Source: Schmidtea polychroa (taxonomy: Eukaryota). From it: DNA of 64,000 nucleotides. Under the pieces are notes generated by a model, which saw nothing but the letters and a program-made list of their open reading frames with translations, ran no database searches and was not told the origin of the DNA. The translations under genes were made by a program, and so were the position numbers. The stretch covers positions 16,244,001-16,308,000 of the forward strand of contig CM097888.1 in the NCBI GenBank assembly GCA_044892525.1. Direction: 5' to 3'. Positions within the stretch are counted from its first letter, which is position 1. Each line of letters opens with the position of its first letter. Shown here in pieces: positions 3,446 to 59,000 of this stretch.

Positions 3446-3597
3446 TTAATAAAAATCGCCNNNNNNNNNNNNNNNNNNNNNNNNNNNNNNNNNNNNNNNN
3501 NNNNNNNNNNNNNNNNNNNNNNNNNNNNNNNNNNNNNNNNNNNNNNNNNNNNNNNNNNNNNNNNNNNNNNNNNNNNNNNNNNNNNNNNNNNNNNNNN

Positions 3598-4468: not shown

Positions 4469-4915
4469 CTTCTGACAGTGATCCCTTAAAGTCAATGTAG
4501 AAATCTAATTTTCCGTCAGGTTCAAGATCGACCTTTAGAATTTACATCACAATTAAAAAATTCATATTAAATCTACTCGAAATGATTTGTTGGATTTTAC
4601 ATAGTCAAATGAAACTGAACAATTTGCAATGAAATCATCTGGTGGAATCGCTGCATCATGATAGACAGTAAATGTAATGAATTGTCCATTTCGAACATCA
4701 CCGTTTAGCTCTTCGTTCCATTTTGGATTAAATGTTTTGTGTTTAGTTGAAGTTTTTCCAAATAAAAATTCATCGATTTCAATAGTGACATAAGGATCGA
4801 GAACTTCATAAAGCTTTGCTGCAGGACCTACAGCATGTCTTTTAGCCCAATCTGTTGCCTTTAATTCAACAGCTTCTATTATTCGAATAATCAAAGTTCC
4901 ATTAAAATATACCAT
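4469..4915 (-). CDS. PRKCE: Novel protein kinase C (epsilon/eta-type), exons 1-2, N-terminal C2 domain; remaining exons not found in window
   Basis: Exon 1 4915-4577 (MVYFNGTLIIRIIEAVELKATDW...LDPYVTIEIDE...KTFNPKWNEE...DAAIPPDDFIANC), 44-bp intron, exon 2 4532-4469 (VDLEPDGKLDFYIDFKGSLSE, donor GTAAAT). Matches the nPKC C2 signature; epsilon versus eta orthology is unresolved. Confidence 0.88.
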
Positions 4916-5591
4916 ATGCCTAAAATACGATGATTGACAACTTTAATAACTTTGTGTTTAAAGTTTTTCGATAATAAATTAAAAATTTATGTAAAAATTT
5001 ATTTTATAATTAATTAAATTTAATTAATAGATTAAATTCATATTATTTACTAGTTCAAAATGATTTTTATATTTTTTGATTATAATTTAGGAATTTAAAC
5101 AACAGACAAAAATAAAATAGAAAACAATAATGAATATTGAATTTTTAAAAATGGGAATTAAAATAATTAATTTTATTAAATATAAATATCAATTTTATTT
5201 CACTTCAAAACTAAAACCTTTAAGTAAATTAGAAAAAGATATTTAAAATATTTGAAACCAATAAAAAACATTTTCTAAATCAATTTTTAATTTAACTTTT
5301 GTGAAAATGTTGTTTCTTAATCTTTAATTTTTTTGGTCTTTTTTTCTTTAAAATAATTAAATTGGCTTTCTCACATGAAATTGTTACAAAATTTTTAATA
5401 TTCATTATAAACATTTTTTAAAAGAAAACTGAATTTAGTAGAACTAGTTATTTAGAGTAAACAGAAATGAGTTTAATGGGATTGACCTGATTACAATTTT
5501 TTAGGCTAAGGTACATCCGCGTTACAACTGACCCACCATACAAGATTACTCGTGGTATTCATGGTACTCGCAACTAAAAAAATATTGGAAT

Positions 5592-5594
<3 letters not shown>

Positions 5595-5673
<79 letters not shown>
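5595..5673. repeat. (AT)n microsatellite
   Basis: Uninterrupted AT dinucleotide run. Confidence 0.95.
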
Positions 5674-5676
<3 letters not shown>

Positions 5677-7440: not shown

Positions 7441-8856
7441 ACATAAACAACACCCCTGTTGAAGAGAATTAAATTTTCTTCATGAAAGCATTTCTAAATT
7501 TCTAATTTGATATATCGGCCATCCTTCAAAACGGAAAAAAAGTATTTTGGTGAATTTCTTCCATGGACAAATTATTCAATCAACAAGTGGTCAACGGCAA
7601 AGTTTTATAGAATTATATTTTGTACAAAATAACAATTTAAAAGATTTTAAAGGCTAATTTAAAAAATGTTACGTTTTATAAACTCTCTTTGTCTTCTTGA
7701 CCTGGCATCCTGCCAATTTCAAGTTTAATAGACTTTGTAATTTTCGTAACAATGACTTATATTCAACGTTCCCAAAAAATGACGACTCACTCTTTTACCT
7801 ATTTCCTTTCCTCTTCAAAAAGGATGAGTCAAATGATGAATCATTACTTGTGTTCTAGAGACGTTTATTCTTGTGGCTCACATCTCATTATTATATACTG
7901 TTTGATCATAACATAAGAAATCCTAATTATATTAACGCATTATACAATGAATAACAGTGTCGAAAATCGACAATATTGAAATGGGAAATTATTCACAGAT
8001 CGTTTGGTAATTGGACTGGTAACTTGTTTACCACATGTCATACCTCACCACCATCACGTACCATCTATCCCTAGTATTCTATATACACATTACTTTTGTG
8101 TATATTAGGGCTTGTAGGATAGCTGTCAGTTATGACGAAAACATATTAGGTCATTCTTAAAAGGTCAAGGAAATCCAATTCATTCGATTCAATGAAAAAC
8201 TAATAAACTGATTATTTGAAATCCATTGAATTTATTTGAGATGAAAAGTAGTCCAAAATATGTTTGGAAAAAATGCAGTTTCAACTTAGTTCATATTAAA
8301 TTCGGAAATCCATTAACTTGGGACATTTAAAACGAAAGACAGTTTTTATGCAATAATATCCAGAATATAAAAAACCAGGGTAATCATGAAAAAATCAAAA
8401 AGTTAGCTGAACCACAAAAGCAATAGAGAGAAATCTTGAATTTTATCAAATTGGAAATGCTTAATTTCCTGTCATACTGTAAAACCACACAATTTTATTT
8501 AATTCTCAAAATCAAAATATTATTAAAAAGACAAAATATTATATACATATATTACTATATGCGAATATTATAAATAAATTGTAAAATAATAAACAAAATA
8601 AATTACAGATAATTTGTTAAATTTAATTAAAAAATATAAAAATAACTACATAAAAATGATAAATCGCTGCTAAATAATCAAATAATAAACAAAGTATATT
8701 GCACCATAAATTCTACGATAAAAATAATAAATAAATAAAAATAAAAATACGCATATATTTATTGTTATAACAAAGATATATTTCTAGATGTTGTCAGTAG
8801 AAAGAAAAAATACAGTTTTCTATTCTTTAAAATTTTTAAGATTCTCTAATCTTATT

Positions 8857-9668: not shown

Positions 9669-9828
9669 TTCTAATATATAATTACGCTCATCACTGATTC
9701 ACTGACTGATTCACTGACTGATTCTATAACGCTCGCTGATTGGTTAAACTTATTTAGTTTAAACTTATTTAGTTTAAACTTATTTAGTTTATTAAACTTT
9801 ATTAATCTACTTACAACAGTAAACAGTA

Positions 9829-9897
<69 letters not shown>

Positions 9898-10298
9898 TCT
9901 AATATATAATTACGCTCATCACTGATTCACTGACTGATTCACTGACTGATTCACTGACTGATTCACTGACTGATTCTATAACGTTCGCTGATTGGTTGAT
10001 CCTAACAATATCATAAAAAAATTATTTCTCTCTCTAATACTATCATAGAATTTTTACACGAATAACGAGTTTTGAAAAAGCGCTTTCTAAGTTTATTTTG
10101 CAAAAAAAAAGAAGTTCTTCAATAAAAACAATTTTTTTGGATTTTTTTTTTCATATTCCATATATATATAACAGAAATAATTTTCAAATGGCTTAAGAAT
10201 ACAAGAAATTGAATTTTTAATAAATATTTAGTATGTCAAACTGTTCATTTATTTTATGATTTGTCAACGGGCACCTTAGGTGCCTTGCAATTAACTAG
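9669..10298 (+). mobile_element. Non-autonomous Helitron-like element with duplicated 5' end
   Basis: 5' block TTCTAATATATAATTACGCTCATC plus (ACTGATTCACTG)n occurs twice (9669, 9897), separated by 15-bp repeats and (TAA)n; 3' hairpin GGCACC-TTA-GGTGCC (10270-10284) followed by CTAG|T (10295-10299); inserted at A|T with no TSD. Confidence 0.75.
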
Positions 10299-10374
10299 TA
10301 TTATATATTACAATAAATGTATTACAATAAATAAGCAAATTGTAAATAATAAAATAAAATAATTTGTTAAACTT

Positions 10375-11630
10375 AATCGGTTTCTTTTACGTTTTGCTGA
10401 TAATGCATGAACCATTCGGTTAAGCACATTTACTCCGCTCTTTGTTGAGTTATAAAATACTTTTTTTTGGATTTATTTTTACCTACATCTATTGTCCTAT
10501 TTTGGTGTAATGTGGATAATAAAATAACAGCCTTATTTTTTTGGTTCGCAGCTAACAAGGGTCATTTTCTTGAGAAAACCGAATAAATTCGTATTCGGTT
10601 CTCTATTCTTTTGTGGCAAAAAATTAAATGGAATACATCTTTTATTTTTCCGCTGAGTACCAACAGATGTTAGCCCTAGTGCCAGAAGTTTTTTTGCTAA
10701 TTTAAAAGTTGTGAAAAAGTTATCAAGTCTAATGTTTCTGTTGGTCACTTCACACGGCCGGCACAATTCTTCTAAACATCTTTGTGATATATTTATGCCC
10801 CTTTAGGTCCTTACCGACTGAGATATGATATACCTTTCAACGATAACTATTGGCACTATCACATATCCACCAAAATTTCATGCCGTACTTATCAGGTTTA
10901 GACTGAATGGATATTCGAAAAGACACTCTGCCTCGAAATGATATCAATTGTTTTTTTATACTCGTTCTTTTTCGGAACATAGTATTTCAATAAATTTCTG
11001 TTTATTTTCTTCCAAACATCGCGAAATGGAACAAATTTATTCTTTGCTTTGCGACTGGATCGTATAGACACGTCATCAAATCTGAAATAACGACGTCACT
11101 CACTGAATCAATTCTTCGACATACACGCACGAAATAAAGGGTTTCAAAATAAAAGATTCCAAAATTCTGTTAAATCAACAATGCTTTGTTTATATATTGC
11201 ATTTAGAAGTAACCCTATAAATGCACGTATTTCCGTGTTACTTTTTGATTTCCACTTATAAACCGCGATAGTTACTGCATGTAAATTTGTATATTTTACT
11301 ATTATGGTTATTATTTAATCATCAAAAAACAAGTCGAATGCATCAGATACACTATCAATATGCTTTCCTCTGGGTAACTTCACTTTATTAGTACATTCTC
11401 TGACATGCTTGATGGCAGGCTATTAGGGATACGGAGTTCTCTTCCATTCCGTACCATCTTTACCAATATAAGTTTCACATTCACTATCATTTGAGATCTT
11501 ACAAAAATCAATCACATCCTCTGTCAGAATTTTCTTTTAGCATATCCTTTTCGCTATATGAATAATCTTCACTGCTATTATCATCTCTTTCACTATCATT
11601 GAAAAAGTCAAAATTAGAAAAATCAAGGAA
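10375..11630 (-). mobile_element. Decayed piggyBac transposase
   Basis: Minus-strand pieces in expected order: acidic N-terminus and YIGKDGTEWKRTP; DAFDLFFDD*IITIIVKYTN; KFVPFRDVW; KPDKYGMKFWWICD; LDNFFTT...TSVGTQRKNKRCIP; FYNSTKSGVNVLNRM. No TIR found. Confidence 0.85.
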
Positions 11631-11639
11631 GTCTTTATT

Positions 11640-12285
11640 TTTATTGTTTATCATTTGCTTGACGCCAAGTTTATAAGTCAGCAAAACATGATCTCGAGTT
11701 TGTCCATCTTTTGAAATCCTGACTCCAAATTCTTCGATAATTCTCTTAACGATGACGCCATTAATAGAATTTTCGAAAGCATTATAAACTCTCCAAATTG
11801 TCTCAATTGCGTAACTATAGCCCGATGATAGATTCGACGTGTGGCAATTATCTTCTGACTTTCAGCATATTGACTGATGGGAAAACTCTTTAAATCCAAA
11901 CCCATTGTCTCAATACCATCCATAGAATAAACAATAGTCCGACGAGAAATTCGGCGTGCAGCAATTATATTTTGACTTTCAGCATATTGACATTTTACTT
12001 GAGCCATTCTTTCTTTTAAACTTGGAGTTTTGTTATCTTTTCCTTTATCTTTATCTTTATATTCAAAAATCGCCCTAACATAACTTGACAATAACACAAC
12101 GAAAATTTTGGAAAAATTCTAATATTCGACAAAGAAAATCAATTCGAACAATTTCATCAAAAATTCCCTACCAAATTCCAAATAAATCACCATTCCTTGC
12201 GTCTGTGTGCACACACATACATGAAAAACCATTTGACAACACCGCGCACACAGATGCCAGGCCGAAATCGGCTGAAACAATCATC
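11640..12285 (-). pseudogene. CSTF3: Rearranged CstF-77 (HAT-repeat) gene fragment headed by hairpin module (copy A)
   Basis: SLKERMAQ, MGLDLKSFPI, QYAESQKIIATRRIYHRAIVT and (frame-shifted) TIWRVYNAFENSINGVIVKRIIEE match the recalled CstF-77/Su(f) N-terminal HAT region; homologous to 57190-58012. Confidence 0.75.
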
Positions 12286-15200: not shown

Positions 15201-16052
15201 NNNNNNNNNNNNNNNNNNNNNNNNNNNNNNNNNNNNNNNNNNNNNNNNNNNNNNNNNNNNNNNNNNNNNNNNNNNNNNNNNNNNNNNNNNNNNNNNNNNN
15301 NNNNNNNNNNNNNNNNNNNNNNNNNNNNNNNNNNNNNNNNNNNNNNNNNNNNNNNNNNNNNNNNGAATAAAATAAAAGACAAAAAATTGACTAAATCATT
15401 ATATATCAAACTGACATCAAATTGAGTTTAATTTAAGTATTCTCCTGCAAATAATTCTGTAAAAAACTGATAATTCGCATCTTAACATAATTCTACTTTT
15501 CCCTCTCAAATATACAGTGAATGCCAATGGGAGTTTATTGGGGGAGTTTTAGAGTTTCTTATAACATTTCCTAAATAATTGTTATTTTTAAATGCCACAA
15601 AAAAGTGTTTTCTGTTAACAAAAAAAAACAAAAAAATATTAATTTATTAAAACTTCTGTAAACATAATATAAATCTAAAATAATGATCGAAAATATAGCA
15701 TTCCAATATCATGGAAAATGCTAATATATATTAAACCGAATTTTCAAGGGGAAAAACTAAATTTTAAAGTTACAGAAATTTTGACATAAAGACAAATTAC
15801 AAATCCCAGTTCGTTCGAAATGGCCTCGATCAAAGAGACGAAATATAAACACACACACAAACATAGATACACACACACAAACATAGATACACACACATAA
15901 GCTACGAAAACTAAACATGCACACAGGCAAGGTTCAGAAATTCCAATAGTTCATCAAGCCCATTGATTGTGTTAGAAACATGCGAAACTAATACAGTTAC
16001 TGGATTAGTCAGTGCACAGATTCCCGATTTCGATATTGCTAAATGATCATGT

Positions 16053-16093
16053 CTAAATTAGGATAATTTATGATTCATCTGCAGCTATATAAA
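16053..16093 (+). promoter_or_regulatory. Actin-1 CArG-like box and TATA box
   Basis: CTAAATTAGG (16053-16062) then TATATAAA (16086-16093); same spacing as in the other two actin promoters. Confidence 0.65.
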
Positions 16094-16136
16094 TGGGAGA
16101 AATTTATTTTTCAATTAGTTAAAAACAATTCAATAA

Positions 16137-17322
<1,186 letters not shown>

Positions 17323-19693
17323 ATAGGATTATTTGATTTTTGGCTTTTAGTTCTAACTAACGCTTTGATATAATAAATAAAATGCTTTTGTCTTAGGTAT
17401 TTTACTTATGCTTTTAGTAATTGAGTTTTAATATATTAAATAACAATAGTTTATATGAAATAATAAATTTAATTTGAAAATAAAATTTTAGAAATCACTA
17501 ATACGTTGTCATTTTACATGAAAAAGTAAAAATCCGATGATAATGAAATTTCAATGTAGTTTTTCTATTTAAATATTAAATTTTTTAACAATGCAAAATA
17601 ATATTTTTATCATTGAGTTCTAAATTTATTTTAAGCATTGCAATCATGGCTGTACTTCCGAAAAGATTTATAGTTTATTTACTCACGATTGAAAGACCTT
17701 CTTCCAGGGTTATGAATTTTTATATTTCCATTTATGCATTTTTATATACCCATATATGGTTGTTTAAATCTAATAAATTAAAAATTCTTAAATTTGGTTA
17801 ATAAGTATTTATTTAAATAAATGATTCTCTTCTTCGAGCCTTTTATGGGTATATAAAAATGCATAACNNNNNNNNNNNNNNNNNNNNNNNNNNNNNNNNN
17901 NNNNNNNNNNNNNNNNNNNNNNNNNNNNNNNNNNNNNNNNNNNNNNNNNNNNNNNNNNNNNNNNNNNNNNNNNNNNNNNNNNNNNNNNNNNNNNNNNNNN
18001 NNNNNNNNNNNNNNNNNNTTATTTTTATTTTTAATTATTTACTATTATTATTTATTAATATTATCCAATCCATAACAACTTGGATTGCAATTTATTTTCA
18101 ATTTTACTTCATTTGATAACGCTTGCATAAAAACTACATTTCTGAATGGCGGCAAAGGCATACCAGTTACTTCAAAATCTGAACATTTAATAATTCGAAA
18201 TTATATGCGAAATCGGAAGGAATGTGTTCACCTTATTTATCAAATAATATTTATATCTAAGACAACGCAGTTACAAACGTTTTTTAAACAATCCGACGTT
18301 TTCCATTAATAGCGTTTTAATTTTCTAGAAAATATAAATTAAAAAATAACAAAATTATCATATATGTGCAACATTGGGCTAACAATCAAATTAAAACTAC
18401 GAAAACCAATGAAATAAAAACTTTTTAAATTCTTTTAATGAGAGTTTTTTTTTTAAAATTTATTTTAGGGTCTCAGAATTTTATTATCAATATCCCACAA
18501 ACAACTATTTTCCAATAATTTTTAAAGTTTTTTGATAATATTATACATTTATCGTCATAACAACATTAGATAAATTTTAAAAGAAAAGGATAAAATGAAA
18601 AAAAAACAGATTCAGGACGAACAAAAAATAAAATTTATCATATTTAAAAATATTACTCATTCAACTAGGTCCGCAGTGTCCGTGAACTTGATTACAGAGA
18701 TGTTTAGGAAAGAGAACACAAACTAGCCGGTAAATGAGGTTTATTAGCAAACACTCTACTTATTTTATATGAAAATGACAAAATTTAAAATTTTATATTA
18801 CTCACTATTTTCACAATGTTATATTTTAATTCGAGAGTTCAACCATGATGAGTGAAAAACTTTCTAAGGGTAAAAATAGTTTACACTTTATTTTTTATTC
18901 AAACATCATTTAAAAGTTTGGCACTATTGTGGAGAACATATTGGACCATATTGTCCAGAGTTTCACAAAGTTCAAAGGTCACCAAGGTCAAAAGTCTAAA
19001 AGCTTAAAAGTCTAGGAATTATTTTCTGCACAATTAAAATTTTTTTTTAATATTAAAATTTTAGAAACTTATAAAATTTCTATCTCAGTTGCTAATATTG
19101 TAATCTATATATTAGGTGAAAGAGAAGATAATTATCTATCTAATGACATAATTCTTTAAAAATATATATTTAAAAAGATATTCAAGATTCAAGTTTCAAA
19201 AAACCTGATATTTTAAAAACCTTATTTAAATGATTCGCGTGATGTAAAGCTATGTATGATTGGAAAAAGCAACATTTTAAAAGATTTTTATGAACATATT
19301 AACTTTCGATATATTGTAGAGCAGAGGTGTCAAAGATACGATCCACGAGCTAATTATAGTCTAAGAGACACAAAATTCTAGCCCACGGCAATGATCTTTT
19401 AAATTTTTATTTACTTTTTTAATTAAATTTTAATTTAAATTTACTTATTTTAATCATTATTAAGTTTTAGAATATTTTAATTTAATATTTAAAATTCAAA
19501 TTAATTAGTAATTAGTAATTAAAACAGTTTGATTATTACAAGTTATTCCAAATCCTACAATTTTCAGAATACAAAACATTTTAAAGACGAGAGGAAAAGG
19601 TAAACATAAAAAATATTATGTCATGTGGAATGAGTATCAAAACCCTACTTGGATATTAGAATCTAAGCTTCAATGAATGAAACTAAGTTTTAA

Positions 19694-24246: not shown

Positions 24247-24911
24247 TATATTGATTAATAGCTAATTTTATATAATTCTATATACGATTGACACGTCACT
24301 TACGTGAGCTTGGTAAATTATTTATTAATTAAAATTAAATAGAATTTTTCTGCTAAGTTTTATAATGTTAATATTAATTTAATTTCGACAAATAAATAAT
24401 ATGCAAATACAGTATTTATCACAAGAAATAAAAATGAAAAAATTAATTATTTTTCTTTATCCCTGGTCAAAATTATTTTTAAAACAAAAATTAGTTAATA
24501 AAATTAATGAAAAAATTGAAATAAAATGTATTAGATAATTAACTTTAATTTTTTTGACGTAAAAATAATTTATTAATTATTTTCTGAATAATTTAAAATT
24601 TTTAAACCAGAAAATGATTAAATAAATTTTATGAAATATTTGCTAAAGTTCAATTTCAAAACGAACAAATTTTAAAATAATTTTCACAAGTTCTGATTTA
24701 TTTTAATTTAAATAAATATAAAATTTAGAATTTAAGATTTAGAAAAATTGGTCAGAAATATTCTTGTATTGAATAATAAACAAACCGATAGAGATACCGA
24801 CATAATTTAAAGAAAAAGAAGCACGAACATTCGGCAGCATGTGAAAGTTAATGTGCAGAATCTACAGCATGTCTAAAATCAGTGAAATATTATTTGCTAA
24901 AATGATCATGA

Positions 24912-26178
<1,267 letters not shown>

Positions 26179-26757
26179 ACATTTACATTATTTTATTAGT
26201 TGAATAAAGTTTTAATTATTCATTTTCGCTTCAAAAAATTACAGTAATAATTATCAAGATTTCACATTTTTTTTGTGTGCTTCCGGTCACCGGATGTTTT
26301 ATTTTTTGTTATGATTATGTCATAATTATTTTGTTCCGTAACAATTATAATTTTAAAATTATTTTTATCAAATACTTATTAATATCTGGTGCAAAATTTC
26401 AAAACTGATAACAAAATGCAATAAATAATTTTAAAATATATTTTTTTAACCTCGGAGATTTTTTTCACAACTATGATTACGGTGACGGTGATTTAGTATC
26501 CACCGCCGGGAACTTAAATGTCTAAATTATTAGATAAATACGAGCTAGAGCAGATGTTTTATTTTTATTTTTTAAGTATCAGACATTCAGTAATATCGAG
26601 TATTAGGAAAATTCAAAAATAACTGCACAAAAGTAAAAAATAGCAAAAAATAATGCAATTAAAAATATAATTTTTGAGTGAATTCAAATTTCTGGAAATC
26701 GAAAAATTTTAGTTTACACTAAGTTGATATTGATGAAAAGGTTTGTGTCTAGATTCA

Positions 26758-26960: not shown

Positions 26961-27807
26961 ATTTCCGCCTCAATAACATCAAAATGTATAAGGGTTCATC
27001 ATTTAGCGATAATCATAAATTAGTCGCTCTTTTCACATATCCGGAAAAACCGGTTTGCTAGCTTCTATTTGATTTGTATTTGGCTTCTCTTGATTTTGAA
27101 GTGATTTTTGAATTGTATAGAGAGATTTTAATAGACTTCTACAGTTTCAATTTGTATTTTTTCGATATCCCCCAATAAAGGCACGGCAAAACAGTGCAGA
27201 CTAAAACGGCGCGGATAAATCTATATCATATCGTGAATTACGTGTGAATTAACTAGATTCTAAAAAAGGAATATAGTGATTAAAATATGAACTTTTATTG
27301 TTAGCGTCGTTTTGGCCGCGCCTTCATTGGTGTAAACCCTATTACTGACATATGGAAAGAATTTAACTTTTAAATTGAAAAACAAAGTCACTGTGGCACA
27401 AACTGCTCGTCGTGAAAGAAATCGTTGTATCAGTTGAAAAAGCGTTGCTTCATGACAACAGATGCTTCTATTGCTTGCTCTGTAGGTCCAATTTCCACAA
27501 AATTATGAATCAATTCTACGTCTTCCTCCTTAAACGATACAGGTAAGTCCACATCAAATTGGATATGTTAAACAAAGTTTCAACTTATACGAAAGCAATT
27601 TTCCAACTTTTGCATAACATAGACACCATCCGTCATAATTAACGATATTTTTGTTTAATTTTAATTCAAATAATGCTAAGATTCCTCCAAGAAATTTGAT
27701 ACCCGTTTCCCCCGTCCAGTATTGATTTTGAATTTTTAGTAAATTTTAATTAATTTTGTACTTTTGTTGTTTGGAACATTTTATTTATTTTAATAATATT
27801 TGTTATA

Positions 27808-27811
<4 letters not shown>

Positions 27812-27874
<63 letters not shown>
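27812..27874. repeat. (AT)n microsatellite
   Basis: AT dinucleotide run. Confidence 0.95.
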
Positions 27875-27879
<5 letters not shown>

Positions 27880-27904
27880 TTCGTACTCACCCCAACAATT
27901 TGTT

Positions 27905-28546: not shown

Positions 28547-29223
28547 TCGCGTCTATTTAGCATTGATTGTATTTTTCTGTTGGGTTGCGCACACAAACGC
28601 GAGGCAAGGTAATTTTAATTTTTATATTTTTATTATTTGATTTATTTTTTTGGAGTTTAGAGAAGTTTGTTTTAAAAAAGGTTTGTGGCGATTTTTTTTT
28701 AATAGAATAAGGATTTTTAAAAACTTTCGTTTTTATTATGAAATGGTTTAACTTAAAGAATGGATATGAATTCACAAGTGTTAACAATGATAGTAGCTCT
28801 AAGAATATCTTTGTTTATTTTAAATCTATTGCATCCGGCAATGCAATCTCATTAATTGATCTAGAAGTTCTTTTCAATATTCCCAAAGATGACAGGGGAT
28901 CCATGACTCAAATTATGTTGGAGACATTTAATGCACCAATGAAAGTTTTAATAATGATAATGGAGATGTTGATGAGTATGAATATTCAAATGTTGTTGAT
29001 AATGACAATGAAAATGTTTAAGGGAATAACAATGATGTATGTTTCAATTCAAGCAGTTTTTTCTTTGTACGCTGCAGGTCGTTCTTCGGGTATTGTTCTG
29101 GACTCTAGTGATCCTATATTACACACTATTGCAATTTATGAAACCTTATCAAGTGGTTCGACAATGTTTCCTGGTGTTGCTGTTCAAATACACAGCTCAA
29201 CTCCATTTCAAATATTTTTATGA
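28547..29223 (+). pseudogene. Hairpin module (copy B) followed by ORF built from actin fragments
   Basis: Module arms TCGCGTCT (28547-28554) and GCGCACACAAACGCGA (28587-28602); ORF 28738-29223 contains [55 protein letters not shown] and [12 protein letters not shown]. Confidence 0.8.
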
Positions 29224-30795: not shown

Positions 30796-30861
30796 CGAAT
30801 ATGTCCACATTTTAATTTCAGTTTAATTTCAATATCTTTTTTTAATCGATACCTAAAATAA

Positions 30862-32044
<1,183 letters not shown>

Positions 32045-33514
32045 ATGTCTAATTTTAATAATAATTAGGACAATTCAATTTCCCCAATTTAGCTTGCCTC
32101 TTTTGAGGAATTTTGTTAAATAAAAATTTCACATTTGTTTAATGTTCTTTATTGAAATTTAATTAATTTCACGAATTTTTGCTAATAATTTAACAAACAA
32201 ATTTAAAAAATAAAATTCTGTAATTATTAATTGATTTTTCATAAAGTTTATTTGGCGAAGTTATACAGTATTCAAAAAGGTGAAAATTATTTTCATCATG
32301 TTTTAAAACTGATAAATTATTAAACAATTGCAAAAAGCTTTTTCGAAAATCGTGTTAAATAGAAAACAAAATATTGATCTGTAGGATTAAAATTTTTGAT
32401 TAAAATATTAAGAAATTATCAATGATAAAAAATATTATAAAAATTTATTGATAGAATAATCAAGCAATATTTATTAATTTTTTTATTTTGGATTTTAGTT
32501 GATGAAATTTATTATTCTTTTATTCATTTCTTTTAATTTTCGTTATATTACTTAAAAATAGTCAGTAAAGGAAAATTCCAATTAATAAAAAATAAAATTT
32601 TATACGTTAAGTAGTAGATTAATAAGTTATCATGGCTATTGTTTGCTTTCCCCTGCCGGAAAGAGTGAAAACGACATACTCACCATACTCAAACGTATCA
32701 CTCATACGTCAATTAAATATTTTATTAATTAAAATTTATGCAATTACTTTTATTTTTTTTTAATTCTTCTCATTTAATATATAATTAAATTTAATTTCGT
32801 ATTTCCATCCGTTTCTTGGTACGAGAATAAATTTTCTATGGAGAATTATACTTTATTAGAACTAATTTTAGATAATATTTTTTCACTTCTCTTTAACTCT
32901 ATGGCAGCCAATGAGGTCGAAAACGACCGAAACATGTTAAACGCGTCCACGTTGAATAAAACGCACCCATTCAATTCTATTTACTGCACATTGGTGTAAC
33001 TTGATGCTCGTCTGATCAATTTATTTATAAGTTGTTTTTCATTTTGGAAGTCTTAGATTCCATAAAGGCATTCGTAATCGTAACACAAAGAAAATTGAAG
33101 GATTCCAGAAGAGTGGTAGGTTTTGAATAAGTTTTGAATAATAATAGGTCTGGCAGAGGTCTACTCTTGTCATACTGAAGACGTTTGGTTTAATTAACAC
33201 AGGTAGTAACGAATCTAATGCCCATTAGAGTCCGGTTAACTCGGGTTGAAGAAAAATTAATTTAATAATATTTTTGGAAGGTATTTATATTTTCAGTTTT
33301 GGTTAACACTACTATCAATTATTTGGTAAACTTATATAATGAGATATCAGGGTTTGAAGTGTTAAACATATACCAAAAATTTTATTTTTAATATTTTTTT
33401 ATAAAATGATGAGCCAATAGAACTATAATTTTATCAGAACTAGTTTAAAAAGTCTAAACGAGCTTTTTCCAATATTTTTTATCAACCGTCACATTATTTA
33501 CAGTAATGTTTCGA

Positions 33515-33624
33515 CCAGTCAGAGGGGGATTGCCTCTGGACTGGCAGTTTTGGCTTTTTTCTATCGCGTCTGTGTGCGCGGTCTGGTTAGACCGGTTATT
33601 GTGGGTGTGCGCACACAGACGCGA
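33515..33624 (+). other. Double-hairpin module (copy C, best preserved)
   Basis: Hairpin 1 CCAGTC-AGAGG/CCTCT-G-GACTGG (33515-33544); perfect 16-bp inverted repeat 33564-33579 / 33609-33624 with internal GGTCT-GGTT-AGACC hairpin. Confidence 0.85.
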
Positions 33625-33742
33625 GCAATGGAAATGCGATGGATTGTTAAATTGGCGATTTCGGGAATTTTGGTTTGTTTATTTCGATGAAATTTTGTGG
33701 AATTGTTAAAAAAATTTTGTTTTAAATTGGTAAATTTTTGAA

Positions 33743-34458
33743 ATGGATTTTGGAAGAATGGCGGTCGGAATGGATTTGCGATGTGATGTAGGTTGTGATC
33801 AAAAATTCTGTCTTACATCTTTTCGAAACATTAACTTTGTGAAAGGTGATCTCATTTATACTGGTTTCCAAGGAAAAATTCCCGATAAATTAATTGTATC
33901 GATTGTCACGGAACTTTCACAGTTGTTGCCATCATTTTTCATGATTATGCATGGGATCGAGTCTTCTAAATTCACAGATAAGTACGTCAATAAAAACAAC
34001 GATATTGTATTATGTATTCGTAAGAAAATAATATTGAATCATGCTATGTCGGATTTTTCAAATCGATTTGTTTACAAAACGGAAATCAGAAATTATTTAA
34101 TTGAAGAATTATCCAACAGATTTTCTCAGTTGTCCGAATTAAAACATTTGGGTAAGTCGAAGTTTGAAATCGCGCGTGTGCTTCGACGGAAACTGCTACT
34201 GGATAAAATGGCATATGACGATAAAATGACTTGCGATATAATATGTTTGTCTATGTCTATGTTTATATTGATCAATTCAATTCCCAATCGGCTGAGAGGA
34301 GACCATTAGGATGTTCAATGATGGCATTATCTTATAATCTTGAACTGGACAAAATGTTATTATTCAAAAATGATCCACGTGCACCTTTGGAGGAAAATAA
34401 AACTGTTCATCTCCTCGTTGATCTAATTCACAGTAATCAAATTATGCAACAAATCTAA
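33743..34458 (+). CDS. Intronless 188-aa ORF plus overlapping 75-aa ORF, unknown; faint DOCK-family resemblance
   Basis: Long open frame in AT-rich DNA directly after the hairpin module; IPDKLIVSIVTELSQLL, DIVLCIRKKIILNH and ERRPLGCSMM loosely recall the DOCK N-terminal helical and DHR-1 segments in order. Confidence 0.35.
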
Positions 34459-35029
34459 ACATGATGTCTATATTTCAGAAAAAATATTTAAAATAAACAA
34501 TAACTTTCATTTTAATTATAAAAATTATATTTAATTCGAAATTAAATTTTTTAAAAGGTAAATAATCACATTAAAATAATATATAAATAGTTTATATAAA
34601 GTATGTGCCTAGTGTTCTGAATACAAATAGTGTACACCCGTTTCCACATGTTAAAAGTCTCTATAATGCATGTTGGTGTGTTCATCAATCGATGACTCAC
34701 CATTTATGAGAATGTTTATTTCATTTTTTCATTCTCAATTCAATTTTATTTATGGTTTTAGAAGTAAGTTTTTTAAATTTAAGTATATTTTAAGGCTTGA
34801 ATTTTGATTTCATATAATTATGAGATCATTATTCAAGCTCTTAAATATTACTTGTAATCAGCATTTATAATATATTTATAATATATTGATAATTAAATTT
34901 CAGGTGCTTTTTTAGGTATTTTATGATATGTTATGAATTTGGAATTATTTCAATAAAATGTAAGTTATATATATTTTTAACTAAAAAGAAATAAAATAAT
35001 CACCAAAAACATTTATTTTTTTAAGAAAT

Positions 35030-35145
35030 AATGGTTCCAATCGATTTTTTGGAGATTCCCAGTAATCTTCCAAAATCTTTATAATTTTCTCCATTTTCAT
35101 ATGGATTGATAAGACGGATTTTGTCATTTTCTGAAATTCTTTGAA
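35030..35145 (-). mobile_element. Tc1/IS630-like HTH remnant
   Basis: KISENDKIRLINPYENGENYKDFGRLLGISKKSIGTII has a helix-turn-helix pattern typical of transposase N-termini. Confidence 0.4.
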
Positions 35146-38100
35146 AATATTATTTTTTTTTTAGTTATTAAAATTTACGATTTTCGAATTTTTTTCTTCA
35201 ATTCCAAAAATGTCGATGGAACTTGTTGAATATCTTCACACAAAGGCGTTTGACTAGAAATATCTGATATGCTGTAAAATATTTTAATTATTTGTAATTA
35301 AATAAAAAAATTCTTACATTGTCAGATCTTCACCTTCGCAAAATGGAAATGTCTCCAAAGAAATATCTGAAAATCTAAAGAAATATTAACTTCAAAAATA
35401 TTTTATAAATAGATCTTACGATGTTTTGTCGTCCATTTCTCAAAAACTCAAAGTTGAGTTGTCAGATTCAAAATCCAAATTTTTTTCAGCCATGAATTTT
35501 AATAATTTTAAATTAATGATATGTTAACAGTATGTTAATGACTCTCTACTTTCGGAACAAAAAAAGCTATATTAAATTTGCGTGTATTTTATATTATGTG
35601 TCCTGTGTTTGTATGTAAAATTATTTTTCTGTCACTTTCTCAATTCCTATAATAAAACTTTCTACATTCGGAACATTAAATTTTTGCACACAGGTAAGTT
35701 TGTGTGTTGCTATAATATAATTTTATCGATTTTTTTTTTAGATTATAGAAACTCTTATATTGTGGAAACGGGTGTATTAGTATGAATATGACACCAGAGC
35801 TTTAAGGCGTCCGCCCTCCACTTTCCCTTCATCCACCGCGAACACGAAAAGTTGCAGTGTTAACTGCGCTGATGAACTACCTCACTCCTCGTAACTCATA
35901 TGTTAATCATTTTATTAACTTGTTTGATCTATTGGCTGTGAGCAGGAAAATGTTTGGAGTTCTTGTAATGATTTTAGATCTACAAAAATGATTCCACTTC
36001 ACAGAAGAATAGAAACAAAAAACGAGATAAAAATCTTTAATTCACTATTAAATTGTACAAAATGCAGTAAAACAAATTCAAATTCTTTTAAATTAATTTA
36101 TTTCTTGATTCAATTTTTATAAATTTTAATGGGGATTTTTGATTATTTAACATTTATTTTATTTCTTAATTTTTGTATTTTATTTAATTTTTACTAGTTC
36201 TGGACATTTCGATCATAAAATTACATTTATTTTTGGTTAAAATTAGTTTTTATCCAACACAAGAAAAATTTACACAAGAACCATAGTCCTCTGAGCTTTT
36301 GATAAAAATTTATAAATGAATAATTAAATCATTAAAATTTATGGTCACTATGGTCAGGTGAGTTTTGATAACAAAATCTTCAAGTTTTCAAAATTTCAAT
36401 ACTTAGTGTCAAATTTCAGATTTTCAAAAGTGATTGTCAACCAGTGATAATTTTTCAATTTATTTTATTTACACTAATGATTTGCAGTTGTACTCATTTT
36501 AAATTCAAATATATATTTCAATAAAATAACAGATTATTAAAATAAATATTAATATAAATCCCAATATCGTTACTATAAATATATATTTATATTCAAGTCT
36601 TTAAGTACCAATATCTTCACATTCTGATACATTTTATTCCAACGAATCATAGTTGTGAACTCCCCTAAATATGATATCGGGTTAGCTCTTAACGCACCTC
36701 TGAATGAAATATCTAACTGGTTTAATACTGGACTGACACACTTTCTCCGAATTACCTTTGACATCACCCTAACAAGAGTGCCTGTATCCCACAATATTTC
36801 TAAAACACACACAAGATAAATAAAAATGAGACAAAAGAAATAAGTATCACATTAAATAAACTCAAACACAACATATATAGACAACAGCAGTAAGCACATT
36901 TGAATTAAATGGCGATGGGAAGGGATAAGAACGGAAATTAGAAAGATTTCCACGAATAACATCGAAAAATGGCTGAGAGATAACAATTATAGCCGAAAAA
37001 CTGGAAATTCATTAAAAATTGCCAAATTCATCATGGACACCAAGCAACGTAACAAAGTTAACCAAAAATCAACATCCAATTTTTAAAATGACAAAAGGTG
37101 AAAAGAAAGAACTTAAGAATTAAAAGAAAATAAGAACTAGACACAAACATTGAGGAAAACAACAGAAAATAGTTTCAAATGCCCATATCCATCATGGCGG
37201 CAAAAAATAAATAAAATATAAAAACCAGAAAATTAATTATAAGTTAAAAGAAATCGCCATTAAAATTGATAAAAGTAAAAATTCGAAATTAAGTAGAATA
37301 ACAAAAATTAAAATTTGTTTTATTGAATCAATGCACGCGCTCATACTCGCACAACAAAATTTCGGTCACAAAAAAATCCTTCTACTCTTGTATGATTTTA
37401 TGGCAATATTTTTCGCAGGAAACTTCAACAGGGATGATTATTTTTGTTTGTGTACATTTGTCAAAGATCATTTGTACAATTATGAAAATATAAGGTTGTG
37501 AAAATCATCGTTAGTTTTCAATTTCCTTTTTCGAACAAGCGAGATTGTTCCAAACCCTAATTTCTTCTTTTCAGGCCCATAGCAACTACTATTGCAAGAT
37601 AATGAAATGAACCACAACCCGGAGTGTTGGTGTTAATGCGGCGTGTATATGGAACAGTTTTACTAGCCTGTATATCAGGTATTTCGTGGTGACCTATATA
37701 GACAATGGACATCATTGACACTTTATTAACCTAGAATGGAAATTGAAAATAAAAGTTTTCAGTCAAATTTCACCGTCTTAGTTGATTTTTCCGCCATGTG
37801 GCTGCATTGTACACGTCTTATGCCAGCTCTGTCGGTACATATAATTTACTTTATATAATAAATCAAAATTTACATTTATCAATTTTTATGGAAATGTCAA
37901 TTAGAGGGGTATTGAATAACTAGGTTAAGAGGAATAAAGTAATGGGTTGGAAATTAAGTGTAATGAACAACTGGGAGGAATGTTTTAACTATATGAATGA
38001 GATTTAAAACTTACATCGAGGCCAAATAGGACTAAATTGGTAGTGCATTTCATTCGTTAAAAATGTGCAAAATTCCAATGGTGCCTCAAATAAATTTAGC

Positions 38101-38270: not shown

Positions 38271-40341
38271 ATGTCTTTGAAACTCTATTGGAATCCAAAG
38301 AATCCTACACATCAATTGATTCCCATTACTTTAGTTGCAACTGGTGTTGTGTATGAAGATATTAGACTACCCGATGACAGTACCCATCGTGGAAAGATAC
38401 CCCCTTACATTGAAAATGCAGACGGGAAAGTCTTAGATAAAACTTTAGCCATAGCGAAATTTTATGCAAAACGAAAACATTACATGGGGAAAGATGATTG
38501 GGATCTTTATTGCATTGAAAAAGGAATTAGTTTAGTAAGATTATTTTATAATTAATTAAAAATAATTTTTAATATTTTTTGTTTGTTTTTGTATTCAATT
38601 CTGATAATAAAATGAAACTATTTAAATTGTAAAATATTTGAATTCTGTAAAACTTATTTTAAAATTTCCTGTTGCCTTTTAAATTCAGTTAAAATCTTCA
38701 AGTTATCCTTATAATATGATTTCTAGATTAGCAAGATCGTAAGGATTCTCAGTGGCATATTAAACAGGAAATGCGAAAGGAGTGAATGGGACAAAGACCA
38801 AGAATCATATTTGAAGGTAACTAAATTAATAATTTCTTAATTTTAATATTAATTATTATTTTCTCGCTTATTGTTATAAACGTTTCCATAAATACACTTT
38901 CAAATTTAGTTATTTTTTATGAATTTTTTAATAATTTAGTAAACTGTTAATACCTAATTCCGGCACCAAATTTTATTTTTAAAAACTAGTTGAATTTATG
39001 AATATCAAAGTAACTCTAATATAATAAAATTCCTTTCGCCAGAAAAACATTTACTATAAACAAATTTTATAATAGCCGATTACCTTAAAATGGGACGTAC
39101 AGTACAGTGCAAGCGCTATTGCCACATACTTATTTTACAATATTCATTTCTTTTAATATTCAACTTGAGTATATATGGTGGAACATAAGACTAATTGGTA
39201 CAATATATTTATTGAATTTCACATCTTTGTAAAAAGTGTATCTGGTATTTGCGAATTTAATTTAACATTTCTTTTAATTCGACTCTCTTGACTTCGGGTT
39301 GTTTGATTATTCAATTGTGATGGTGCAGTCTCCATTATACGAGCGTAATTGTTGATTTGAACTTGATGTATTCATTGACTGAATGTTCTGTGGTCTGACG
39401 ACGAGTAGGAGTATCAGCAGTAGCTTTACAAGATTTATCATTTGCAATGTGCATTTGATATATAGATGAAACATTTCGTTGATCCACAAATTGTTCCAAT
39501 TCAAGAGTTTTGAGCATATTTTTATTGATTTAAAAGATGGGGATGTTTGAAAGAAAAGTATATATATATATATGCATATTAAAACAATGTATTTTAATTA
39601 ATATAATTTAATAATATTTGCAATTTAACCATTAAAAAAATTAATTTGAAAGTCAGATAGTCCCCGTCGAAGTACGCGAAGCGTATCGAGAGATGAAAAG
39701 CGATAGTGTTGTCGGTTGTTCCGTGTATTCGTCTATGTTATAATCTTTGGTTATTTGATTGTTTGGTATTTCGTAGTATTCAAGAGTACAAAAGGAAGGT
39801 TTTAATCTGGAAAGGTTAACCATTATGTAGTTGTTGTCGATCTCTAGTTTTGCTGTATTTTTGTACAGCTCTATAATATGGAATGGACCTTTGAATCTGG
39901 GTTTGAGGTTCGAAGAGTCGATTATTCTTATCCATGTTTGAGTTGCTGAGGAAAGAGACTGTGTATATTGTTTGTACGACATGGAATATGTGAATCGCGG
40001 ATTATTATCTAAGCTCCAAATATGTTCGTGAGTGAGATTGATCTCGTCTAACAGTAAGTGATTGTAAAGATCAATGAGTTTGGTATGAAAGTATTGGATC
40101 CAAACAAAAGTTGTGAAGGAGACACGCCGCTTGAACGATTGATGTGTTGTGTCAGCCTATTAAAACAAATGGTAATGCTTTGATCCATTTTGATCCATAA
40201 TTCACTTGAGAAAGGCAGTGCCGAAAATTCGTGAGTATCAACAAACATCGATATATTACAGATTTATAGTCTTCAAGCTCTCTTTTCAATTCAATGGATA
40301 AAATAATCAGTGGTGAAATTGGAAGAAATAAAAGTTCTTAT

Positions 40342-40398
<57 letters not shown>

Positions 40399-40689
40399 TT
40401 ATTTATTTTTAAATCTATTTTCAGTTTCCAAATGATTAATAAAATTAATAGGATAATAATAATAGTTTTTATATTTTAGCATATTGACAAGTTGATTACC
40501 GAAAATGGTCATGGGTTTCTTGTCACAAAAGGAATAACACTGACAGATTTATACTTTTTAGTCATGATGAATTATTTGAAATTCACTACATTTTCTAAAA
40601 CATTGGAAAATCATCCAAATTTCATTACAGTTCATGAAAAAATACTGGCAACTCTACCTCTAGTTAAGGAATATTTAGAAAAGCCTTAA
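38271..40689 (+). CDS. Divergent glutathione S-transferase-fold protein (sigma-like), 3 exons, 187 aa
   Basis: Exon 1 38271-38534 (KLYWN...GVVYEDIRL...GKIPPYIENADGKVLDKTLAIAKFYAK), exon 2 38727-38816, exon 3 40480-40689 (NGHGFLVTKGITLTDLYF...HPNF...LPLVKEYLEKP*); all phase 0, GT-AG. Confidence 0.82.
39653..40248 (-). mobile_element. Gypsy LTR-retrotransposon integrase remnant in GST intron 2
   Basis: SGVSPSQLLFG (end of integrase core) followed by LKPRFKGPFHIIELYKNTAKL...VNLSRLKP (GPY/F module). Confidence 0.8.
40345..40393. repeat. (AT)n microsatellite
   Basis: AT dinucleotide run in GST intron 2. Confidence 0.9.
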
Positions 40690-43590: not shown

Positions 43591-43687
43591 AAAATCCATC
43601 ACATCGTAACATTTGTGATATTAATGTCGCACTTAACCAAAATTCTATTTAGAATTATTATCTCACATCACTGAACAATAGTAAATA

Positions 43688-44472
43688 CACTCATACCTCG
43701 CTTTACGGCCTAGATACGTTCCAGGAAAGTTGGCCGCAAAGCGAAACGCCGCATAACGAATCAAATATTTTGATACAATTCCATATAAATTCAATAGGAT
43801 TGGTTCCAATACATCAGGCTCTGGCTCCTCATCAAGTGATCGGTCCTCTTCGATATAGACCAGTTCCTCATGTGAAAGGGGTTCTCTATCAGCATTTAGC
43901 AAATCAAGCACATCACCTTCTTCCAAATCCTCAAAACCAAGATCATTCGCTAGGTTCAATATGCTTTGTCTTATTTCAGAAAGAGAATCAACTTCAGGAT
44001 CTTCAGTTTTTATGCATTCTGGCCACATTTTTTTCAAAACATGGTTCATTGTGGTTGATTTCAATTCCTTCCACGATTCGCTAATGTTGTCTACAGCATC
44101 TTTAATGTTGTAGTTTTTCCAAAATTGTTTAATCGAATATTCACCATCAGTTACGTTTATAAGTTTTCGAAATGTTCTACGTAAATAATATGCCTTAAAA
44201 GTGGCTATTGCACCTTGATCCATTGGCTGGATTAGAGCTGTTGTATTTTTTGGAAGATACTCAATCTCCACATCTTCAGATAATTCGCATAAATTAACCG
44301 GATGTCCTGGAGCATTATCCAAAATGAGCAAAGCCTTGTCGCACCTTTTTTTCACACTTTTTTTGGCCGTATAACGAAACATTTTAGGCCGTAAATCGAA
44401 AGTGCCGTAATTAAAGTAGGCCGTTATAGCGAAAAGCCGTATAAAGAGCAGCCGTATAGCGAGGTATGAGTG
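43688..44472 (-). mobile_element. Internally deleted pogo/Tigger element
   Basis: TA|CACTCATACCTCGCTTTACGGC ... GCCGTATAGCGAGGTATGAGTG|TA (21/22); ORF 44382-43663 with LILDNAPGHP, YLPKNTTALIQPMDQGAIATFKAYY (DDE_1 domain). Confidence 0.92.
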
Positions 44473-56024: not shown

Positions 56025-59000
56025 TTATTTATGGGCCCTTGGATGCAATTGATAATCCGCCATTTCTCGAATGGACATTTCAACACTTGCCAAATTATTA
56101 ATACATGTTATCCATCTTTCTGCAACATCCCCTTCGCTATCTACTGCAAACAGATATTCTCGACCGGGTGTTTTAATTGTTAATGCTGTCTGGTCCGGCA
56201 TTACACTTCTTGAATTAGGAGGAGCTCCCGATACCGCACCATATCCATTGGATTGTTCCCCAATTACAATTTCTCCCTTACCACAAGCAGACAACGGCCC
56301 GGCAGAATACAATAATCGACGGCCTAAAAGAACACACCATCGCTTCTGCCACTGTTCAGTTAATTGAGATCCAGTTTTATACATCCAACCACTCATTGTA
56401 ATATCCAATGTAAGATCTTTTGCAAGCTGCCAGTATCACATTTTGAATTAATAATCAGAATAATAAAAATAAATAATAATAAACTTTAAAAAAAATTTGT
56501 CGATAGCGGAATTATTTGTAAAAATATAATTCAAATAAATAAATCAATCAACTGAAGATGTTTCAAAGAATATAATTTTAACCAAATGTATATATTTTCT
56601 AAAATTTTTAATTTACGATCTCTAAATTTTGTTTATTCGACAATAAGTCTGTCTCCGACTGCTTTAGATAACCGTTAAAATAATTTGTCGATAGCGGAAT
56701 TATTTGTAAAAATATAATTCAAATAAATAAATCAATCAACTGAAGATGTTTCAAAGAATATAATTTTAACCAAATGTATATATTTTCTAAAATTTTTAAT
56801 TTACGATCTCTAAATTTTGTTTATTCGACAATAAGTCTGTCTCCGACTGCTTTAGATAACCGTTAAAATAATTTGTCGATAGCGGAATAATAAAAATAAT
56901 AATAATGTGAAGTCATAAAAGTAACCAAAACCGATTAATGAAATAGAAAAGTTTAGTCGAAGAACCAATTATAATCTTCCGCCATAAATAAGAATTGCGT
57001 CATGTTTTCCATGAAATATTTGTTGGTTTTGATCTCAAATGAAAATGTTCTAAATGATGTCCTTAATCATTTTAATCACAATTTAGTAAGATTAAACATT
57101 GTGAAAAGTGTGTTCCAATTATTGTCGTTGCGTTTCTTAACATGTTTACGGACACTAATGAACGAGTAAAGTTAAAAAATTGACACCATGTGTTTTAGCC
57201 GATTTCGGCATCGCATCCGCGTGCGGTTTTTTGTCGTTTTGGCGCACACAGACGCGGAATATGATCTTTTTAAGAATGCATTTGGAATTGTGGGTTTGTA
57301 TTTTTATTAAATTGTTGAAATCGATTTTCCTTTTTCTGGAATTTGCTGGAATTGGTTTAAAAAGTTTGTTTAAAAGAAAATTTTTTTGGAACAAGATTTG
57401 AATATTCAAATTTCAAAGAAAGAATGGCTCAAGATAATAATTATGAAGTAGATAAACTGAGTTTGGATTTAAAGAGTTTTCCCATTTGGTCAGATTATGT
57501 GAATTTCTCAAAATTAACTCAAGTCATACGTCAATATGCTGGAAGTCAGAAGACAATTGCTGTACGTCGAATTTCTCATCGGACGATTGTTTATTCTATG
57601 GATGGTATTGAGACAATGGGTTTGGATTTAAAGAGTTCTATTTAGGCAAATTGTATGAAATTCTTAAAATCAACTTATGTCAAATGTCAATATGCTAAAA
57701 GTCAGAAGATAATTGCCACACGTCGAATGTATCATCGGGTTATAGTTACGCCATTGATTCGCATTCAGACAATTTGGAGAGATTATAATGCTTTCAAAAC
57801 TTCTATTAATAGCGTCATTGATAAGAGATTTATCGAAGAGAAGAGTCGGGATTATTTGAACGCAAAGCGAGTTGCAGGAGAATTTGGAGCTTTATTCTTA
57901 AAAGATGGTCAAACTCAAGATCATGTTTTGTTGACTTGTGGACTTAGGGTCGGGCGAGTGATAAACAATAAAAATAAAGACTTGCCTGATTTTTCTCATT
58001 TTGATTTATTCAAATCTGATCCTAACACCATGTTTTGAACCGCGTGCATACTGTTGCAACAGGTGGTAATAACAAGTAATAAATAAACCTAACCTAAAAT
58101 AAACTGTTGCAGATGTGACACAATGCTTATAGTCCTATGTTGGTAAACGTATATTTAGACAGCTTTAGCAGCCTTGTCTGAAAATGACCTTGTTATTTTT
58201 GACGGCTATTGCAGTCATGTTACATTGTGAACTTGGTGTTGACGGTTATGTACGCAAGTGTCCATCAACGTGTTAAAGTATTGATTTTTTTGTATATAAT
58301 AAAAATAAAGAATCAAATTTTTCAATCACATGCCAATAATAACGTCTCATTTAATATTGGTTTAACACCTCAAGACAAGCCATGAATACCTTATGTTATT
58401 TGTATCATTCAGATAACTGCTACCTTTCTATATCAAACTTCTTGCCTTCAGACTTTAAGAGAAAAATTTCCTACTGAACAATGTTTTAGCTACTCATTAT
58501 AGAACATTTGATTGAGCAGCGTTTTGTAAAGTTGAACATGAAGCCTCTGATTGGTGTCTATTCATAGATTCATCGAAGAGAAACCCAAAGGCAATTCTAA
58601 TACATAATGGTAACATGAAGTAACTACTTGATGCAATTAAATAAATTCACATCAATGGAGTATACGAGCTAACTTGAAAGTGATTGGCATGTTAATAAGC
58701 ATTCAAGGAGATTTCACAAAATACATTTGACAGATATGTGCCCATATAACACAACATCAGGCATGAACCGCCATATCTGATCCTCTTGTGTAGCTTTCAG
58801 AATGTGAATCCATCCAAAGTTTTGCCACCATCAAAGTAGGTTTAATGAAAAATTTTGTAAATGGCTAAGCAAAACAAATTCACTAAACTTTTCATTATTT
58901 TGTAGAAAAATTTCCAAAAATTAGCAAAGTCAAGCAGAAAGATAAAATCTTTATAGGAACCAAATATACAAGAGGTTAGAGGATATTGAATTTGATTAAC

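Follow-up and report, generated by a model that had tools for sequence, protein, structure and literature searches.

The window, a stretch of 64,000 nucleotides of Schmidtea polychroa DNA (28% G+C, 14% C, six assembly gaps), contains four copies of a module of about 250–300 bp, in which a palindrome with 15–16-nt arms is followed by a C-poor leader and then by an ATG-initiated ORF (Table 1). The 15-nt arm motif occurs six times in the window at three mismatches or fewer, against 0.07 occurrences expected by chance, and the six occurrences belong to four palindromes, referred to here as c33564, c28547, c57 and c12. At this threshold both arms are recovered in c33564 (33565–33579 and 33609–33623, perfect) and in c12 (12198–12212 and 12244–12258), together with the right arms of c28547 (28587–28601) and c57 (57242–57256). 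The right arm is the conserved half of the palindrome, the left arm being decayed in c28547 and c57. The right arm is separated from the first ATG of the ORF behind it by 119, 136, 167 and 191 nt in the four copies, and the leader between palindrome and ATG has 3–6% C compared with 14% in the window. The longest ORF opens at the first ATG past the leader in all four copies, and of the approximately 11 ORFs in the window that reach 110 aa and are judged genuine, four are module-linked. The original prediction had placed an inverted-repeat module at these four sites, with the left arm decayed at 28547 and an ORF some 120–200 bp downstream of each copy, and each of these observations holds.

The likeness among the copies extends beyond the arms. 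Positions 33566–33755 are similar in DNA to 12257–12062 (E = 1.7e-10), so that the resemblance in the downstream part of the module is real. On the other side, similarity among the copies reaches about 25 nt beyond the left arm, and upstream of that point it is not significant between lineages; the earlier statement that upstream sequence differs between copies is thus correct beyond about 25 nt. A search of the 64-kb window with a profile of the four copies finds no fifth, and two scans of metagenome DNA with the palindrome match only L003 and L004, which are GC-rich bacterial genes. Because only c33564 folds better than its shuffled counterparts (z = −7.1, −25.4 kcal/mol, against z of −0.5 to −1.6 for the other three), the hairpin is not maintained as a structure, and in three copies it is a sequence relic. 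The module had been described as a hairpin; the palindromic sequence is present in four copies, and the fold itself is found in c33564.

Elsewhere in the window, two exon-like ORFs, 4562–4915 (−) and 56025–56408 (−), encode a PKC-type C2 domain and a PH domain and are probably parts of real flanking host genes. A 330-bp stretch at 3598–3927, 88% self-complementary and lying between N runs at 3461–3597 and 3928–4062, is a foldback repeat or else an artefact of the assembly. Three sites, 5585–5675, 27798–27882 and 40327–40450, have a palindromic AT-rich microsatellite in common.

Table 1 Module copies, their cargo and associated features, in window coordinates
Feature	Position	Strand	Remarks
Second small hairpin of c33564	33515–33545		directly upstream of the c33564 module
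Module of c33564	33541–33742	+	palindrome and G/T-rich leader (4% C) up to the ATG
Palindrome of c33564	33564–33624	+	perfect 16-bp arms, 33564–33579/33609–33624; 29-nt spacer with a nested small hairpin
188-aa open ORF of c33564	33743–34309	+	behind the module
Palindrome of c28547	28547–28602	+	left arm decayed; right arm with 1 mismatch; z = −0.5
Chimeric 161-aa ORF of c28547	28738–29223	+	cold-shock/Y-box piece, three actin pieces and filler
Complete non-autonomous unit c57, 1.14 kb	57137–58276	+	TTAA at both ends; imperfect TIR, 57141–57156/58257–58272
Palindrome of c57	57211–57257	+	left arm decayed, right arm perfect; small hairpin before it, 57199–57210
Cargo frame of c57	57424–58038	+	CstF-77 with an internal tandem duplication, then about 18 codons; one in-frame stop
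Palindrome of c12	12198–12258	−	2 mismatches per arm; preceded by the same small hairpin as c57
CstF-77-derived cargo of c12	11599–12007	−	homologous to the c57 cargo, 81–90% identity in blocks; two frame-changing indels relative to c57
piggyBac-superfamily transposase remnant	10290–11653	−	contiguous with the c12 cargo, same strand; DDE_Tnp_1_7, E = 3.6e-8 and 8.6e-7
GC-rich perfect palindrome	10268–10286	.	core GGCACC TAA GGTGCC; unique in the window; next to TTAA

Gene fragments behind the modules

The ORF of c28547 is a mosaic whose pieces all lie in the sense direction and in a single frame: a cold-shock-domain (CSD) piece, actin residues ~107–130, a 32-codon filler, actin ~132–168 and actin ~298–314. 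It matches the Pfam CSD (E = 6e-4) and Actin (E = 1.5e-5) families as well as CspA/YB-1 in the PDB (E = 0.002). A 96-nt insert in the actin piece was considered as an intron and rejected, as excision of the GT..AG stretch does not restore actin. This copy is located between the second and third of three tandem actin genes (16036–17323, 24894–26179 and 30857–32046, all +), which are 96–97% identical over the coding sequence and one short intron; the likeness of the third gene to the other two begins just before the ATG and ends at the stop. Compared with these local genes, the actin pieces of c28547 have 68–72% DNA identity, and the differences fall mostly at third codon positions (32 of 55, compared with 5 of 55 at second positions). 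Because identity is this low and the differences are concentrated at third positions, the source is taken to be a different actin gene.

Both c57 and c12 carry CstF-77 sequence. In c57 the pieces cover residues ~103–170 and then, past the internal duplication, 129–206, with matches to CstF-77 in the PDB (E = 1.2e-9 and 7.7e-19) and to Pfam Suf (E = 5.9e-20). The homology between the two copies runs from 57191 to 58013 against 12279 to 11599, on opposite strands and 45 kb apart, and on this comparison c57 and c12 are two copies of one capture, module and cargo having been duplicated as one unit. Their differences are spread over the three codon positions as 17, 23 and 17 of about 138 each. Because of this even spread and the frame-changing indels, the divergence is taken as neutral decay, and both copies are dead.

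The ORF of c33564 stands apart in that no relative was found by exact look-up or by protein and Pfam searches. The one hint as to its origin is a weak Pfam match to the CNOT1 DUF3819 family (E = 0.11), and the single-sequence structure model (pLDDT 37) is too poor to search with. As a diverged CstF-77 piece it was rejected, with p = 0.23–0.74 in a shuffle test and no Suf/CstF match. More generally, the module-linked ORFs have no relatives at comparable length among 5.8 billion clustered proteins. A 1.14-kb unit (34633–35776), bounded by 35-nt inverted repeats, 86% complementary and each TA-flanked, lies about 320 bp downstream of the c33564 ORF. It resembles a non-autonomous Tc1/mariner-type element with a microRNA precursor inside, as 34786–34847 is a near-consensus full-length match (81 bits) to the Rfam family mir-753, which we take to be a planarian (Schmidtea) microRNA.

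The cargo had originally been described as CstF-77 pieces (twice), actin pieces and a 188-aa ORF left without an assigned origin, making four different cargos. The CstF-77 and actin assignments stand, with the addition that the "actin" ORF begins with a CSD piece, and searches leave the 188-aa ORF where it was. The identifiable cargos do derive from different host genes, at least three in number; with c57 and c12 being duplicates of one unit, they form three lineages rather than four. The proposal that the module acquires gene fragments is borne out by host-gene pieces directly behind it and by one ORF that is a multi-gene chimera.

Ends of c57 and the transposase remnant beside c12

All 60,992 pairs of TTAA sites lying 0.5–5 kb apart in the window were scored by the information-weighted complementarity of the adjacent 15 nt. 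The pair that bounds c57 ranks first, at 17.8 nats compared with 14.3 for the runner-up. Here TTAA at 57137–57140 and 58273–58276 flanks inverted repeats of the form CAYGTT..GGACAC, with 13 of 16 TIR positions complementary. The left end is positioned 54 nt upstream of the module homology, and module and cargo are enclosed; since only about 6 of the 963 TTAA sites sit in such a position, coincidence is unlikely. The TIR begins CAT/CAC rather than with the commonest start, CCC; the former start is also seen in some S. mediterranea piggyBac-like elements (PBLEs). There is no transposase within the c57 unit, and CstF-77 residues ~103–206 lie inside its TTAA/TIR ends, which is the Pack-type arrangement. 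An 8-mer from the c57 left arm occurs twice in the window (0.06 expected), the second time at 58040–58047 in the 3′ part of c57. The sequence at 18676–18691, considered as a second TIR of this type, is a look-alike that lacks TTAA.

The cargo of c12 runs into a piggyBac-superfamily transposase remnant that aligns to residues ~70–465 of 581–582-aa piggyBac transposases at 44–67% identity; these full-length relatives, P0006 and P0151, were taken from a search of 1.84 billion representatives. The remnant has at least two frameshifts and 10–12 in-frame stops, and ends ~115 residues short of the C-terminus, so that the Cys-rich domain is absent. The c57/c12 homology continues unbroken into the transposase side and crosses the likely start of the transposase by about 18 codons. 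On this evidence c57 looks to be derived, through an internal deletion, from an element of the c12 kind; the 18 linking codons fall in the unconserved transposase N-terminus and have no alignable counterpart among the relatives. A copy linked to an intact transposase or Rep had originally been suggested as something to look for; the 64-kb window has this decayed transposase remnant, no Rep gene and no intact transposase copy of the module family. The absence of a TIR and target site duplication, and of diagnostic ends in general, had also been part of the original prediction. Both statements are wrong for c57, with TTAA and TIR at 57137–57156 and 58257–58276, and the layout as a whole includes the transposase remnant contiguous with c12.

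Exactly where the match of the remnant to its relatives stops lies a further palindrome (10268–10286), which differs from that of the module. It may be a 3′ sub-terminal palindrome, or else the end of another (second piggyBac-like) insertion. Downstream of the remnant, 9700–9960 holds tandem 12-mers (GAATCAGTCAGT) and a long (ATT)n run. A right TIR of c12 at 7943–7971 was rejected, as a gapped inverted match at least as good arises in 45% of random placements; in addition, no transposase C-terminus lies between, and there is no similarity to the c57 3′ end.

Ends are proven in one of the four copies, c57. TTAA-anchored and gapped inverted-match searches found no TTAA duplication for c33564, c28547 or c12, in no copy do inverted matches lacking a TTAA anchor exceed the null range, and no 3′ terminus is present within 5–6 kb for c33564 and c28547, where an assembly gap from 30212 may hide that of c28547. 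Homology of c33564 to the c57 TIR upstream of the palindrome is plausible by eye and not significant, and a TIR shared across lineages is not supported in this region. An AT-rich, TTAA-anchored pair at 28495/32166 (13/15) extends from 52 nt upstream of the c28547 palindrome to just past the third actin gene. As a candidate for the ends of c28547 it was rejected: its score of 14.3 is within noise, it bears no resemblance to the c57 TIR, and the pair is attributed to chance. A genuine pair would put a whole actin gene inside the unit.

A proposed piggyBac-like carrier and its alternatives

The arrangement seen in c57 and c12 can be compared with a complete, apparently intact AT-rich piggyBac-like element at 374–2905 of L001, a 3-kb JGI metagenome contig (sample 3300035182) that presumably represents invertebrate DNA in an environmental sample. 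The L001 element has TTAA, a perfect 14-bp TIR and the transposase P0006 (581 aa), which is the closest full-length relative of the c12 remnant. Two sub-terminal palindromes lie at its 5′ end and one, inverted, at its 3′ end; the leader that precedes the ATG is 297 nt long and has 7% C. The order is thus the same as in the module, namely TTAA, TIR, sub-terminal palindromes, C-poor leader and ATG. The L001 half-sites TGTG[CT]C/GGCACA resemble the inner part of the module arms GTGTGCGC/GCGCACAC, and the palindrome at 10268–10286 resembles the L001 sub-terminal palindromes. There is no DNA similarity between the module and L001 or L002, and the likeness is one of layout.

In S. mediterranea, 13 PBLE types of 2.1–3.2 kb are described, several with CAC/CAT-initiated 14–15-bp TIRs and TTAA duplications (PMC10813416 and supplement), and sub-terminal repeats, sometimes palindromic, are common in PBLEs (PMC5381638). 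The flatworm elements with CAC/CAT TIRs (PiggyBac-2, -10 and -13_Smed; PMC10813416) are alike in TTAA and a 14–16-bp TIR, as seen in c57, and in DDE_Tnp_1_7, as seen in c12, that source giving the first 5 nt of each TIR for the named Smed families. With L001 they have in common with the module sub-terminal GC-rich palindromes and a C-poor leader before the ATG. In contrast, the module palindrome, with 15–16-nt arms about 30 nt apart, is unlike those of L001 in sequence, and the window holds no intact autonomous copy. In moth piggyBac, a dimer of the Cys-rich domain binds a palindromic internal repeat adjoining the TIR (PMC7351741). This 19-bp repeat (PMC7351741, PMC5861402), which like the module palindrome is placed just inside the TIR, is likely a functional analogue of the module arms; it is contiguous and located at bp 17–33, whereas the module palindrome lies about 70 nt inside with its arms about 30 nt apart.

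We therefore favor, with a probability of roughly 0.58, a reading in which the module is the 5′ sub-terminal region of a PBLE family, and the copies are "Pack"-type derivatives, defective and dead, that contain host gene fragments. Because TTAA/TIR ends are present in c57 and a transposase remnant is contiguous in c12, the element can be filed under a known superfamily. Its 5′ order would be the TTAA target site, a short TIR, about 55–75 nt, the GC-rich palindrome, the C-poor leader and the start of the internal ORF. On the model of moth piggyBac, the palindrome is a predicted binding site for a dimer of the transposase C-terminal Cys-rich domain, and the C-poor leader is a putative promoter/5′UTR that would drive transcription of whatever follows. 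In the c12/c57 lineage, about 100 codons of CstF-77 would have been acquired between leader and transposase, with later loss of the transposase through internal deletion giving rise to the 1.14-kb TTAA/TIR unit of c57. The c28547 and c33564 lineages would have kept the module while the transposase was replaced by the mosaic of CSD, actin and filler or by the 188-aa ORF; both presumably belong to the same family, their ends having been lost, diverged or hidden. Capture may have proceeded by template switching during repair of the excision gap, as proposed for Pack-MULE and Pack-CACTA. We suggest this route because the cargo is mosaic, colinear and internally deleted, as such repair yields in other cut-and-paste families. 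Of the original idea of a mobile promoter or replication-origin-like module, mobility is retained; the origin is not, as there is no Rep/HUH gene and the hairpin structure is not conserved.

The PBLE reading brings the copies close to Pack-MULE and Pack-CACTA elements and to Turmoil-1 of C. elegans (PMC2572040), in which family termini likewise surround unrelated host-gene fragments. The multi-gene chimera of c28547, internal deletions with filler and the lack of a transposase in the c57 unit are all Pack-type traits. Unlike Pack-MULE and Pack-CACTA, the carrier here belongs to the piggyBac superfamily, and its host is an animal. The identifiable fragments also differ from Pack-type cargo in that all are sense to their own leader and begin right after it, and one capture, that of c12, precedes a transposase gene instead of taking its place.

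Helitrons, too, combine a chimeric cargo of gene fragments with a GC-rich hairpin close to one end, and the module could be the terminus of a different, possibly undescribed, terminal-hairpin element that captures gene fragments and is Helitron-like on the opposite strand. The element end would then be about 25 nt outside the palindrome, where all four copies lose similarity upstream of the left arm, and the c12 transposase and the c57 TTAA/TIR would be unrelated neighbours. Gene-fragment mosaics are a Helitron hallmark, and the opposite strand of c57 and c12 reads small hairpin followed directly by CTAA/CTGA. However, the base after CTRR is A rather than T, no CTRR is present in c33564 or c28547, and the spacing from hairpin to end is not that of a Helitron. 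The module copies have neither 5′-TC/CTRR-3′ ends nor an A|T insertion site nor a Rep/Hel gene, the hairpin sits on the 5′ side of a sense cargo, and c57 has a TTAA/TIR pair. An ORF survey of the window found no Rep/HUH/helicase gene or remnant, the transposases present being piggyBac and pogo DDE_1 only. At the apparent boundary the sequence changes from GC-rich to AT-rich, and there 35–40% divergence wipes out similarity in any case; moreover, two independent piggyBac signals would both have to be coincidence. We regard this explanation as unlikely. The pogo/Tigger-type match is a DDE_1 endonuclease domain in an open 239-aa ORF at 43663–44382 (−) (Pfam, E = 1e-18), a transposon remnant.

Also unlikely is that the module is a small independent repeat, either a foldback/MITE-like sequence of about 300 bp or a solo 5′ end left by truncation, with the ORFs of c33564 and c28547 as chance neighbours and the actin pieces derived, for example, from a decayed member of the local actin array. 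The lack of 3′ ends for these two copies and the location of c28547 within a cluster of three actin genes are consistent with this explanation. On the other hand, the identity of only 68–72% to the local genes and the third-position differences point to another actin, and a decayed tandem copy leaves the in-frame fusion of actin to a CSD piece and filler unexplained. The longest ORF begins exactly at the end of the leader in four of four copies, these being four of about 11 real ORFs of at least 110 aa, and in c57 and c12 module and cargo are duplicated as one unit.

A different role for the same carrier, which we hold to be decidedly improbable, is that the family is a piggyBac-derived expression cassette placing sense CstF-77, Y-box/CSD and actin pieces behind its own promoter/leader. 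Conceivable uses are an N-terminal CstF-77–transposase fusion that steers integration, or decoy/dominant-negative peptides directed against host control. The sense orientation of five of five identifiable fragments, the start of the longest ORF at the leader end and the perfect-palindrome copy with its intact 188-aa ORF agree with such a role. Least probable of all, and very much so, is a non-mobile module, a conserved promoter/5′UTR of a fast-evolving local gene family with exons assembled by exon shuffling: the conserved leader with terminal ATG, the long open ORFs and the occurrence of four copies within 46 kb accord with it, but the flanks differ, copies lie on both strands, c57 has TTAA/TIR ends and c12 a transposase remnant, c57 and c12 diverge neutrally and with frame-breaking changes, and the ORFs lack comparable-length relatives among the clustered proteins.

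Significance for planarian genomes

That cut-and-paste transposons capture fragments of host genes is well documented for plants, and for animals such cases have rarely been documented. Our literature search found no report of gene-fragment capture by the piggyBac superfamily. If the PBLE reading is confirmed genome-wide, planarians would become an animal system in which transposon-driven exon shuffling and its by-products can be counted, the latter including chimeric transcripts and small RNAs homologous to actin, CstF-77 and other essential genes. It would also account for odd gene-like ORFs that genome annotation otherwise calls genes or pseudogenes.
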